A stretch of 64,000 bases of DNA. Origin: Chrysemys picta bellii (Eukaryota). Shown piece after piece: positions 41,049 to 51,385 of the stretch; position 1 is the stretch's first letter; the number at the start of each line of letters is the position of its first letter. The DNA lies in the NCBI RefSeq assembly GCF_011386835.1, contig NC_088807.1, positions 26,846,001-26,910,000 on the forward strand, read 5' to 3'. Position numbers and translations under genes: made by a program. A model generated the notes under the pieces. The model saw only the letters and a program-made list of their open reading frames with translations. It made no database searches and was not told the origin of the DNA.

Positions 41049-44000
41049 TCACCAGAGTTGCGTCTCCCGGATCTCAGAGATGGTCTGGCTGGCTCGCTGC
41101 AAGGCCTGATGGGAGACAGAAGACATTAGTCCAGGCAGGGGGCAGAGAGACTACCCCCCACTCTCCTCCCCTCACCTGGAGCAGCCCAGCAGCCTCCTTG
41201 CGCTGCTGTGCCATGTCCTCTGACTCTGTGAGCAGCACGTCCAGCAGCTGCTGCTTGTATAGCTGCCCAACCAGCTGGCTCTGCAGATGGTCCTTGACAT
41301 AGTTCACCAGGAAATGCATGACTGTCTTGGGGACGCTGTGGAGGAGGGGCAGAGGTCACAAGGGCGCCTTTCAACCCCCCGTGGTCCGTAAGGGTCCAGG
41401 AGAGGGACTGCAGCCTCACCCCCTCGTCCCCCCACATCTTACCTGTCCTGGATGCTTTTGCGCACTATGAGGAAATAGGATTTGATGAGTCTGCGGATCA
41501 CCTCGCAATCCCGCTGCTCCCGCTGGCTCAGCTTCCGTGTGGCCGGCATGGGCTGTGGGAAGAGAGAGAGGGCACAGGACTTCCAGGGAAATGGGGGTCC
41601 CACCACGCAGGGCCTTCCCCCAGGGATAACAGTAGTAAGGTTATAAACCAGGCAATCTCCAGTAGCACAACGCTGGGATCACACGCAAAGGTCAGAAAAT
41701 TCTCCAACAAGGAGGTGGGTTGAAGCTGAAGCTTGAAACATTGAGACTGGAAATAAGGCAGAAATTGTTAAGAGTGAAAGAATGGATTGTGGTGCATTGT
41801 CCAGCACTGGCCAGCTGTTCCCTAGCCTGGGGTGTTGCGGGGTGTATGATGATCAGGATGATCCCTGCTGGCCTTGGAAGCAAAGCAGCTCTGAAAAGGC
41901 ACGAAGGGAGCCAGAGCAGCGAGGTTGGCCCAGACACAGGTCTCCTGCTGTCACTCCCCCACCATCACCTGCCTGTGTGGGGAGGGGGTAACTCACCGTG
42001 TCCAACAGATTGACAGCATGGGAGCGACTGGGGCTGGAATACATGGGGGGCTGGACGTTCCCCTTGGGCTTCTCCTCCATGCCAGCATCCTCCACTTTGT
42101 CACTCTTCCAGCGCCGGATCCCCTCCACAGGGGGGTCATTCTGTGGAGAGCAGAGACCAGCTGGCCACCAGCATGCCATGAAGGGGGGTGGGGCGACACT
42201 GGTGCCCATTGTTGGGGGGGAAGGGGGGGGGAAGAGGCTCAGTAGCGGGACATGGGGGAGGGGAGCAGAGAGGCATTACCTTGCTGCTGCTGACAGAGGC
42301 AGACACCAGCGCTGTGTCAATGAAGTCCGGGTGCTTGGTGTTGATATAGGCGAGCTCGATTGCAACCAGATTATGAACCTGCAGGGGAGAGAGATGGGAT
42401 GGGAGGGGGCCCAGCATGGTGGATTAAAAACAAAAAACCCTGTGAGCTTCGAAAACAAAACAATATTTAATTTAAACTCAATAAATGTGATTTTTGTTGT
42501 GAAGCTGTTTAAAATAATATTGAGAGTATTGTAAGCTTAGCCCTTAACACAAGTTGCCAGAATTGTAATGGATTTTAATCAAAAGCAGTATGTTTGCTGC
42601 TGACATCTTAAAGAACATCAAACCGCAGAAGTCACTGGCTCAGCACTGCGAACCAGAGTTTGTTGAAAGTTAAACCAGGTTTCAATAGCAGAGAGAATAC
42701 TTCCTTCATTTCAGTTTGTTCAAAGTTCAAAACCCAACTGGGAGTTGGACAAGCTGGAATCCTTGTAAAATCTCAGACTGGAAGAGGGAAACAACTAGTA
42801 GATCTTGTCCTCTTACACTTAACTTTCATTCAAAGGACATCGTGAAAGGCCTGTGTTGAATATATCAGTTAGTTTTAAATGCAAAACATGTTTTGATTGA
42901 CATTTGTTCTTCTGGACCCAGAACATTTAAGGTAATTTAATTTTCTTACTTGTAATTTGTGTCAAGCTCTATTTGGATGGAAACTGGAATCCATTAAAAA
43001 TGCCCAGAAACAGCATTTAATTGTTTTTATTAATTATCTAGTAAATAAAAATGCATCATTCACCATTTTCTAATATCAGAAAATTAAATTCTGAATAAAT
43101 GTAGGTTCAGCTACAGAACGGTTTAAACAAATGTGTCCAGATCTAGTGTACCCGCCGGCTTTGCAGAGAGAAGCACCACACTTAGTGTAGTGTAAAGACT
43201 AGATTTAGCTGCAAATTAACATGGTTTAATGGTTATCCACCAGTGAGAATCCACCTTTTAAGTTATTTTCCTAAAAAGTACAAATGCAAAATATGATTAA
43301 AGTTGGTGATTTTTAAAGTGCATTTTCCCACTTGCTGACTTAAATCAATCTGCCCTGGGACACAGACTTCAACCCCCACACCCGTATCAGCCCTCAACCC
43401 TGCATGGATCCCAGATGTCCCATAGCAGCCCCCTCCCCCTGGGGTGTTACCATCTCGTTGGTGATGGGCAGCCTCTGCCGCAGGACACCTGTCACCACCT
43501 CCACAATCGCTTCATGCAGTTTGGGGAAGCGCAGCAGCTCCTGGGGTGGGGGAGGGGAAGAGAGGAAAGACCTTGGAAATGTTGAAACTTCAAAAGAGGG
43601 GGGGTGGGTACCTGCATGTTGTAGGTGGAGCAGGGCTGGATGATGGGGGGCTGAGGGTTTCCAGGGGGAGGGGGGGTACCTGCGTGGTGTAGGTGGAGCA
43701 GGGCTGGATGATGGGGGGGTGAGGGTTTCCAGGGGGAGGGGGGGTACCTGCGTGGTGTAGGTGGAGCAGGGCTGGATGATGGGGGAGTGAGGGTTTCCAG
43801 GGGGAGGGGGGGTACCTGCGTGGTGTAGGTGGAGCAGGGCTGGATGATGGGGGGGCTGCGGGTTTCCAGGGGGAGGGGGGGTATCTGCGTGGTGTAGGTG
43901 GAGCAGGGCTGGATGATGGGGGGGTGAGGGTTCCCGGGGGGAGGAGGGTACCTGCGTGGTGTAGGTGGAGCAGGGCTGGATGATGGGGGGGGGTGAGGGT

Positions 44001-50000: not shown

Positions 50001-51385
50001 CATAGGAGCCACTGGCTTCAACCCACAGACACGGGCTCCCCAGCAGTAGGGAGAGAGGGGGTCACAGTGAGCCAGACACCTTGGGATCTCACCACCTCAG
50101 CCCTTGGGGTCTCTATCCTCAACCTCCCAGAGCTGGAAGGGGGTGGGGGGCCTCCCAGTGAATGGTACTGCAAAGCAAGGGAGAGAACCCAGGAGTCCTG
50201 GCTTCCAGCTCCCCCCCCACTCTAACCACTATACCCCACTCCCCCTAACGCCTCCTGTCACCTCAGCCCAGGGAGAGCCCACCTGCCTCCCAGCACCCCC
50301 TTACTTGTCTCCCCACTGGCTGCACGTTGCCGCTCCTCCAGCGATGGCACGTTCACCAGCTGCAGGACCAGAGGCCGCCGGGTGACAATGCCGGAGCCCC
50401 GGGGCAGGAAGTCGCAACCCACAATGCTCTCCAGAACCGAGCTCTTCCCACTGCTCTGTGATGAGGGGAGAGACGGGGTTAAGGCTGGAGGGGACAGGAG
50501 GGTGAGGGGCAGCCAGACGGGGTGGGGAGAGGGAGAAAAGGAGCCTGGAGCTTCAGAGATTAGAGGGTGTTGGGGGGGGGGGGGTCTCACCTGGACCCCG
50601 GTGGGGCAGCTGGATCCCCCCAGGGAGGGAAGGGTGGATCTGGGAGGGGGGAGGTCTGGGGTCTCACCTGGACCCCAATGGGGCAGCTGGATCCCCCCAG
50701 GGAGGGAAGGGTGGATCTGGGAGGGGGGAGGTCTGGGGTCTCACCTGGGCCCCAATGGGGCAGCTGGATCCCCCCAGGGAGGGAAGGGTGGAGCTGGGAG
50801 GCGGGGGGGGTCTCACCTGGACCCCAATGGGGCAGCTGGATCCCCCCAGGGAGGGAAGGGTGGAGCTGGGAGGGGGGAGGCGGGGGGGTCTCACCTGGAC
50901 CCCAATGGGGCAGCTGGATCCCCCCAGGGAGGGAAGGGTGGAGCTGGGAGGGGGGAGGCGGGGGGGTCTCACCTGGACCCCAATGGGGCAGCTGGATCCC
51001 CCAGGGAGGGAAGGGTGGAGCTGGGAGGGGGGAGGCGGGGGGGTCTCACCTGGACCCCAATGGGGCAGCTGGATCCCCCCAGGGAGGGAAGGGTGGAGCT
51101 GGGAGGGGGGAGGCGGGGGGGTCTCACCTGGACCCCAATGGGGCAGCTGGATCCCCCAGGGAGGGAAGGGTGGAGCTGGGAGGAGGGAGGCGGGGGGGGG
51201 TCTCACCTGGACCCCAATGGGGCAGCTGGATCCCCCAGGGAGGGAAGGGTGGAGCTGGGAGGGGGGAGGCGGGGGGGTCTCACCTGGGCCCCGATCACCA
51301 CGATCTGGGGCAGCTGGATCACCTCAGCCCCCACCGTGTTGAAAATCTCCTGCAGTTTGTTGATCACGGGGATCAGGGTCTCCAT
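41049..51385 (-). CDS. Dynamin-1-like (Drp1/DNM1L-family) GTPase, probably a paralogue of canonical DNM1L; 17 coding exons, 672 aa
   Basis: Exons (5'->3' on minus): 51385-51284, 50455-50305, 49890-49844, 49533-49462, 48888-48802, 48465-48303, 47572-47452, 47052-46921, 46534-46328, 45399-45279, 44518-44363, 43540-43451, 42378-42280, 42140-41997, 41552-41443, 41335-41176 and 41105-41049, totalling 2019 nt, all GT-AG and in frame. Motifs: G1 [24 protein letters not shown]; middle domain [14 protein letters not shown]; [17 protein letters not shown]...IRETQLW*. AATAAA (minus) at 40764-40769. Confidence 0.93.
42412..43357. mobile_element. AT-rich DNA-transposon relic (hAT-like) in a DNM1L-like intron
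   Basis: Abrupt AT-rich block; ends CAGCATGGTGGATTAAAAA...TTAAATCAATCTGCCCTG; no clean TSD found. Confidence 0.45.
43607..44362 (-). repeat. 68-69-bp tandem repeat copying the exon-11 3' end and its splice donor
   Basis: 11 extra copies of (minus strand) ATCATCCAGCCCTGCTCCACCTACACCACGCAG|GTACC following the true ...ACCTACAACACGCAG|GTACC. Confidence 0.95.
45460..46189 (+). mobile_element. Gypsy-type solo LTR (730 bp) in a DNM1L-like intron
   Basis: TGTGACG...CCGTGACA termini; 5-bp TSD GGCAT (45455-45459 and 46190-46194); internal AATAAA at ~45902. Confidence 0.88.
48915..49415. repeat. Tandem array of the GGGAGCCAGGACTCCTGGGTTCTC family (tRNA-head-like units)
   Basis: About 7 units of 70-80 bp containing TGGTGGTTAGAGC and GGGTTC. 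Confidence 0.85.
50585..51283 (-). repeat. ~76-bp tandem repeat copying the exon-1 3' end and its splice donor
   Basis: Nine extra copies of (minus strand) GATCCAGCTGCCCC...GGGG(T/C)CCAG|GTGAGACCCC after the true donor at 51283. Confidence 0.95.

Follow-up and report, generated by a model that had tools for sequence, protein, structure and literature searches.

Because human and mouse each have one gene for it, Drp1, the product of DNM1L, is regarded as the sole master GTPase of mitochondrial and peroxisomal fission. The canonical protein of these two species (structures 4BEJ, 5WP9, 3W6N and others) consists of a dynamin GTPase domain, a middle domain, an unstructured variable domain and a GED, with neither a PH domain nor a proline-rich domain. 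DNM1, DNM2 and DNM3 are built from the same GTPase, middle and GED modules and likewise assemble into helices and carry out fission, whereas they possess both PH and proline-rich domains. Insect Drp1, a single-copy outgroup that shares these motifs and is about 64% identical, and fungal Dnm1/Vps1 predate the vertebrate duplication considered here. The present analysis concerns a 64,000-nt stretch of the genome of the turtle Chrysemys picta bellii (assembly GCF_011386835.1, contig NC_088807.1, positions 26,846,001 to 26,910,000; hereafter the window), which carries at 41049..51385 on its minus strand a second member of the Drp1/DNM1L family. We assign a probability of roughly 85% to the reading that this gene is the orthologue, in turtles, of a DNM1L paralogue of ancient vertebrate origin, that it is intact, expressed and constrained, and that its product is, by inference, a conventional fission enzyme.

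The predicted protein has the domain architecture of DNM1L. Local tblastn with turtle proteins, combined with inspection of splice sites, placed the ATG at 51385 and the TGA at 41051-41049, with 17 coding exons in between, tabulated with their AG/GT borders and phases. These add up to 2019 nt, or 672 codons and a stop; every intron is of the GT..AG type and none of the 17 exons contains an in-frame stop. The intact 672-residue reading frame that an original prediction had claimed from the letters alone was therefore found, the exon sizes given there match those of our exon table, and the original observation held in each detail that could be checked. Searches of the PDB with exons 1 and 9 returned human DNM1L as the best solved relative by many orders of magnitude, and exon 1 matches DNM1/2/3 far more weakly than DNM1L (E about 1e-4 versus 1e-13). 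The protein is nearer to Drp1 than to classical dynamins, Vps1 or Mx. Canonical Drp1 and the turtle protein share G1 to G5, the GPRP motif, both phospho-site contexts and the conserved Cys, at 73-76% identity summed over exons. On every sequence-level criterion, the predicted protein belongs to the Drp1/DNM1L subfamily.

Phylogenetic position of the turtle gene

Homologs were collected with two queries. The first was a stop-free open reading frame (ORF) of 397 residues in the window, running through exon 11, an intron repeat and exon 12, of which the exon 11 part alone was scored; the second was the full-length echidna protein that the first query returned. Trees were rooted with insect Drp1 and inferred by a quick and by a careful search. 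The turtle members of these trees were database proteins, among them the Chrysemys picta bellii model P0014, which is 100% identical to the window in most exons, and they served as proxies for the protein joined from the window. A psyllid protein (P0128) turned out to be a scrambled model, and served only for fetching proper insect Drp1.

The rooted trees contain two reciprocally monophyletic vertebrate clades: canonical DNM1L (support 98 in the quick, 99/96 in the careful search) and the paralogue (99 and 100/100, respectively). Both clades contain cartilaginous fishes, ray-finned fishes and tetrapods, so that the duplication dates to the time between the divergence from insects and the radiation of jawed vertebrates. 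On this topology, the duplication that would have given rise to the two Drp1 genes predates the divergence of sharks and bony vertebrates. A whole-genome duplication is a plausible origin, in keeping with the many gene pairs that connect human chromosome 12 with the X chromosome. The turtle database proteins fall within the paralogue clade (100/100), which is sister to the canonical group, and not within the latter. In the green turtle, one protein belongs to each clade (canonical P0152 and paralogue P0121), and the same holds for the cobra. Sequence identity amounts to 74-92% within the paralogue group and to 64-75% between this group and canonical DNM1L. For the exons of the window, the summed identity is 91% with the paralogues of Anolis and echidna, 82% with that of a shark and 76% with the canonical DNM1L of a turtle.

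The two clades are fixed for different residues at 13 alignment columns, nearly all of them conservative exchanges (F/L, S/T, V/I, Q/R), and by eye the translated window exons carry the paralogue state at about 11 of these, for example in TISEIRE. The insect outgroup agrees with the paralogue at 6 of the columns, with canonical DNM1L at 4 and with neither at 3, so that neither copy is clearly ancestral-like. The paralogue clade does have the longer stem branch, and it has evolved faster than the canonical clade.

These results bear directly on the reading that the gene is the turtle's sole DNM1L, in other words the orthologue of mammalian DNM1L moved to a new locus. Databases give both types of gene the same name, “dynamin-1-like protein”, which speaks for such a reading. 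It is nevertheless extremely improbable, given a clade that stands apart from mammalian, bird, frog and fish DNM1L at 100/100, the presence of both genes in green turtle and in cobra, and window exons that are closer to the paralogue of a shark than to the canonical gene of a turtle. The original prediction of an ancient paralogue, distinct from the canonical gene when placed in a phylogeny with vertebrate DNM1L and “dynamin-1-like” genes, is upheld by the trees; the gene type found in the window does not group with mammalian DNM1L as a sole gene.

A second alternative is that the gene is a reptile-specific duplicate or a retrocopy of DNM1L. Its first sighting in a reptile only, and a LAGE3/UBL4A microsynteny that is confined to turtles, would favor this alternative. 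A retrocopy is contradicted by the 17 exons with introns, and a duplication within reptiles by Anolis, echidna and dunnart orthologues that share this exon series, as well as by clade members that range from sharks to monotremes. We consider this alternative hardly credible, and retain the ancient paralogue as the preferred reading.

Teleost paralogues form a long branch. An unrooted quick tree (LG+G4, midpoint root) had put the teleost si:dkey sequences next to canonical DNM1L, at a support of 89. With insect outgroups and the mixture model this placement vanished, and the teleosts grouped with gar and bowfin within the paralogue clade at 100. We read the unrooted placement as long-branch attraction.

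Constraint, transcription and distribution

The full set of 17 exons, in the expected order, was recovered from Gopherus, Caretta, Anolis and echidna; dunnart yielded 16 of them. The ratio of non-synonymous to synonymous change (dN/dS), calculated from Nei-Gojobori counts that were made per exon and then summed, was 0.06 against Gopherus (77 synonymous and 16 non-synonymous differences), 0.073 against Caretta, 0.042 against Anolis, 0.063 against echidna and 0.081 against dunnart. The paralogue is under strong purifying selection.

Transcription was assessed in 14 sequencing runs with small assemblies, which come from four studies and carry two organism labels; one run per study was aligned to positions 40300-43590. 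For words sampled from the 3' part of the gene, coverage was 66-74% in these 14 runs and 98-100% in the five whole-genome runs. In all four aligned runs, contigs skip 41106-41175, 41336-41442, 41553-41996, 42141-42279 and 42379-43450, which correspond exactly to introns 16 to 12, all of them GT..AG on the strand of the gene. Past 43543, the contigs continue with the authentic end of exon 11 and not with one of the decoy copies in the 68-nt array described below. Two contigs, of 1791 and 1882 nt, have enough length for a near full-length mRNA. Exact splicing in four independent studies is hard to explain except by mRNA. The turtle paralogue is intact, spliced as modeled and transcribed.

The contig ends and poly(A) signals also outline a 3' untranslated region at 40300..41048 on the minus strand. 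In two runs the 3' ends lie at about 40708-40773 (poly(A) signal at 40769), and in another the transcript extends past 40300 (signal at 40327); these two classes suggest alternative polyadenylation. Other putative RNA contigs read through intron 14 and into intron 12 (41524-42026 and 42350-42893) at a depth below that of the spliced form, and may represent pre-mRNA or transcripts with retained introns. In Ensembl, the Chrysemys model P0014 similarly runs from exon 13 into intron 13.

It could be argued that the gene no longer has a function, being a relic that is in decay or is not transcribed. Large exon-derived tandem arrays occupy introns 1 and 11, several contigs retain introns, and the turtle database models are messy, with many isoforms. 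Set against these are the intact frame, dN/dS values of 0.04-0.08, spliced contigs in four studies, and the use of the authentic exon 11 donor despite its decoy copies. A relic is thus very unlikely, and the gene is neither untranscribed nor evolving at a dN/dS near 1, a combination that would have contradicted the original prediction.

Proteins of the paralogue type, with lengths of about 665-680 residues, were found in turtles, squamates, caecilians, echidna, platypus and at least seven marsupials. The paralogue is also present in coelacanth, lungfish, bichirs, gar, bowfin, many sharks and teleosts, where it corresponds to si:dkey-32e23.4 of Ensembl and ZFIN. Together with the unnamed “dynamin-1-like protein” genes of other vertebrates, this teleost gene shares the clade (100/100), the length range and the short variable domain of the turtle protein, and the teleost type differs in having SKLD in place of TKLD in G4. 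The original prediction had described the gene as kept in reptiles and lost in mammals. This part has to be corrected, as echidna, platypus and at least seven marsupials keep the paralogue, as do sharks, fishes and caecilians, and among mammals only placentals show none in the top matches.

Absences were judged among the best 120 annotated proteins obtained with the echidna query and not by genome searches. Among these 120, all matches of at least 79% identity come from animals other than placentals, birds, crocodilians, frogs and salamanders, and none of these five groups contributes a paralogue; birds, tuatara, frogs and one caecilian appear with the canonical gene only, at 72-77% identity. 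Many placental genomes are annotated, and a placental copy would rank with those of the marsupials, which makes for good evidence, from annotated sequences, that placentals probably lost the paralogue. For archosaurs, and for frogs and salamanders, the evidence of loss is suggestive. The old duplicate thus appears to have been lost repeatedly and independently.

Four marsupial copies (P0034, P0057, P0131 and P0125) sit on long branches of 0.13-0.39, and are markedly faster than the monotreme and reptile copies. Marsupial sequences also show changes next to G2 and G5, such as GIMTRRP and VNRNQ.

Protein features and probable role

The protein can be followed exon by exon along the minus strand. 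Exon 1 (51284..51385, 102 nt) holds the start codon and the first half of the P-loop, and 27 of its 34 residues equal those of human DNM1L, so that exactly the 7 differences that had been predicted were found by comparison. Exon 2 (50305..50455, 151 nt) supplies the SSGKS of G1, which reads GAQSSGKS across exons 1 and 2, and G2 (IVTRRP). Exons 3 (49844..49890, 47 nt) and 4 (49462..49533, 72 nt) were assigned from the exon table and the order of exons in orthologues. G3 (DLPG) is located in exon 5 (48802..48888, 87 nt), which is followed by exon 6 (48303..48465, 163 nt), and exon 7 (47452..47572, 121 nt) contains G4 (TKLD) and the start of G5, VVNRSQ, which continues into exon 8 (46921..47052, 132 nt). 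All GTPase motifs, as had been claimed, can therefore be read in the exon translations. The middle domain includes exon 9 (46328..46534, 207 nt), which aligns to residues 292-360 of human DNM1L, and exon 10 (45279..45399, 121 nt), and the GPRP assembly motif lies in exon 11 (44363..44518, 156 nt). Exon 12 (43451..43540, 90 nt) is spliced to exon 13 in the contigs of four runs. Exon 13 (42280..42378) has its 99-nt form in the RNA contigs, with a joint between 42140 and 42280, and a possible alternative donor at 42307 would give a form of 72 nt. Exon 14 (41997..42140, 144 nt) encodes the short variable domain, exon 15 (41443..41552, 110 nt) the start of the GED, exon 16 (41176..41335, 160 nt) more of the GED, and exon 17 (41049..41105, 57 nt including the TGA) the end of the protein; these last four are documented by both the exon table and the RNA contigs.

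Pfam searches of exon-sized ORFs identified Dynamin_N (exons 2 and 6), Dynamin_M (exons 7-13) and GED (exons 15-16), and no other domain. In particular, the PH domain and the proline-rich tail are absent, and the protein ends 19 residues into exon 17, directly after the GED. Of the classical Drp1 phosphorylation sites, both sequence contexts are kept: in exon 14 an S-P directly precedes HAVNLLD, and in exon 15 RKLS is followed by the conserved Cys. The variable domain marks the clearest structural difference from canonical Drp1. In the turtle protein it measures 54 residues between HPDF and HAVNLL (exons 13 and 14). It measures about 54-56 in most paralogues that could be measured, compared with 51-106 in the sampled short isoforms of canonical Drp1, longer canonical isoforms lying outside the length range of the search.

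Across the paralogue clade, catalytic residues are kept in all inspected lineages; dasyurid marsupials have small changes beside G2 and G5, with the threonine and the N-R retained. GPRP is found in 40 of 41 sampled members of the clade, and the two phospho-site patterns, both of which the turtle has, in 23 and 30 of the 41, with near-variants in others. Since the marsupial copies are faster and these patterns are not universal, regulation may differ between lineages.

Given this conservation of motifs, the paralogue would act as a conventional Drp1-type fission mechanoenzyme. The protein would form cytosolic oligomers through a stalk made of the middle domain and the GED, in which GPRP is kept, and would be recruited to the outer membrane of mitochondria and peroxisomes, where GTP would drive its assembly and then constriction. 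Phosphorylation at the S-P before HAVNLLD and at the RKLS before the conserved Cys would exert control, and co-assembly with canonical Drp1 is possible. The locus is accordingly presented as no new kind of system, but as an annotated gene with a sequence that predicts conventional Drp1 biochemistry. The main differences between the two genes are expected to concern expression, control through the variable domain, or the choice of adaptor. The likeliest arrangement would be a division of labor with canonical Drp1 by expression or regulation, possibly with co-assembly, rather than a new biochemical activity, because the difference between the two proteins lies mainly in a short variable domain and 13 mostly conservative substitutions.

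A different possibility is that the paralogue has a distinct job, be it on another organelle or membrane, in a restricted tissue such as the germ line, or as a partner that regulates Drp1 or acts on it in a dominant-negative manner. Pure redundancy is made less likely by the retention of both copies over more than 400 million years in many lineages; the variable domain is short and nearly uniform, and in Drp1 this segment regulates lipid and adaptor interactions. The longer stem branch and faster evolution of the clade point in the same direction, as do the apparent several independent losses, from which the gene would seem dispensable in some body plans. The diagnostic substitutions, however, are few and mostly conservative, all residues needed for catalysis are retained, the turtle and much of its clade have the assembly motif and the phospho-site contexts, and the sequence indicates no new targeting device. 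We therefore regard a distinct job as possible and rather doubtful, and favor a conventional enzyme with divided expression or regulation.

Several points weigh against our overall reading of an ancient, expressed and constrained fission paralogue. In the tree, a flawed Chrysemys model and proteins from other turtles stand in for the window protein, and the pair of genes was shown in green turtle and cobra rather than in Chrysemys. The run type “RNA” is a guessed label, and the spliced form was not reported either way for the DNA runs. The absence from placentals, birds, crocodilians, frogs and salamanders is derived from the best 120 annotated proteins, marsupial copies evolve faster, the two phospho-site patterns are not clade-wide, and the role of all clade members is predicted from sequence.

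No paper that treats a vertebrate paralogue of DNM1L turned up in full-text searches of the literature library used, in agreement with the earlier description of the gene as largely unstudied. The paralogue is annotated in RefSeq and Ensembl as “dynamin-1-like protein” and in fish databases as si:dkey-32e23.4, and has no name of its own; it appears to be an annotated sister group that has never been studied. A second Drp1 has thus been under strong constraint since before the split of sharks and bony vertebrates and is expressed in turtles, and on present evidence a single Drp1 is, among mammals, a peculiarity of placentals. The paralogue needs to be taken into account in dnm1l phenotypes of non-placental models, and as zebrafish carries si:dkey-32e23.4, its role is directly testable in the main fish model. 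A bolder proposal, which we put forward tentatively and think less probable than its opposite, is that zebrafish, reptiles, marsupials, monotremes and others divide their organelles with two non-redundant Drp1s, the second having its own adaptor, tissue or organelle niche or tuning fission by co-assembly. If so, the losses in placentals, in archosaurs and in frogs and salamanders would mark rewired fission control, and loss-of-function phenotypes of dnm1l in fish could be buffered by the paralogue. The apparent repeated loss in placentals, in birds and crocodilians, and in frogs and salamanders also makes the gene a clean case for the fate of an old duplicate.

Neighboring genes, putative promoter and intronic repeats

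Past the 3' end of the paralogue, three neighbors on the plus strand were identified by Pfam: an SLC10A3-type exon at 26002-26844 (SBF, E 2e-38), a UBL4A-type ubiquitin-like exon at 29959-30198 and a LAGE3-type Pcc1 exon at 33596-33757. The last two bear out the predicted LAGE3/UBL4A neighborhood. On the 5' side, a ceramide-kinase-like (CERK-like) gene on the plus strand, from about 56600 to 62400 and extending further right, lies head to head with the paralogue; its annotated orthologues in Gopherus and Caretta contain DAGK_cat and CERK_C. The gene is hence flanked by the CERK-like gene and by LAGE3-, UBL4A- and SLC10A3-type genes, and not by FGD4 and YARS2. Human Xq28 is not known to carry a CERK-like gene, and this gene may be a second old paralogue kept next to the Drp1 paralogue.

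The order CERK-like, Drp1 paralogue, LAGE3, UBL4A, SLC10A3 is the same in Gopherus flavomarginatus and Caretta caretta, the 5' flanks of which are collinear with the window from about 51.7 to 62.4 kb. In these two turtles the paralogue is located on sequences of 15-26 Mb, whereas canonical DNM1L of the green turtle is located on a different chromosome of 348 Mb. Unlike canonical DNM1L, to which it is sister and not orthologous, the paralogue therefore resides in an Xq28-type block and on a small chromosome in turtles.

Outside turtles, tblastx found no neighboring exons common to the window and the flanks of the paralogue in dunnart, Anolis and echidna, and microsynteny at the 10-kb scale is common to turtles only. 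The echidna paralogue has a FAM3-type gene behind it, at a distance of less than 8.5 kb; FAM3A is also a gene of Xq28. The immediate neighbors in gar (a WDR45-like PROPPIN gene) and in a characiform (an Arf-like gene) differ, so the orthology of the fish genes rests on the tree. At the spotted gar locus (L007, 1035-5270), the flanking PROPPIN/WD40 gene has 358 residues, the size of WDR45, which is X-linked in human; this is a weak hint that the gar locus also lies in an X-related paralogy block. A crude ORF and composition filter of positions 1-26000 yielded no convincing plexin exon, and the label PLXNA3 was not confirmed and is not relied on. The SLC10A3-type neighbor consists of one long ORF with a full SBF domain, and much of its coding sequence seemingly lies in one exon.

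A CpG-rich patch was found just upstream of the ATG, where a CpG promoter had been predicted, and we consider it a putative promoter and 5' untranslated region (51400..52000, minus strand). In windows of 200 nt its GC content is 0.59-0.73 and its observed/expected CpG ratio 0.63-0.76, compared with ratios of 0.09-0.3 on both flanks. The whole window has a GC content of about 61% and contains two short runs of N, both far from the paralogue.

The introns carry several tandem arrays. The array at 43598-44396 has 11.7 copies of a 68-nt unit with 93% matches and starts inside the 3' end of exon 11; the end of this exon and its donor constitute the founder unit, and each unit repeats both. A second array, at 50578-51292, comprises 9.3 copies of a 77-nt unit with 94% matches; it takes up intron 1 and extends to the exon 1 donor. 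Further arrays lie in intron 4 (48911-49418; 76/160-nt units, 84-86% matches) and in intron 7 (47202-47397; two copies of a 98-nt unit). Overall, the introns of the paralogue are unusually rich in G+C-rich minisatellites.

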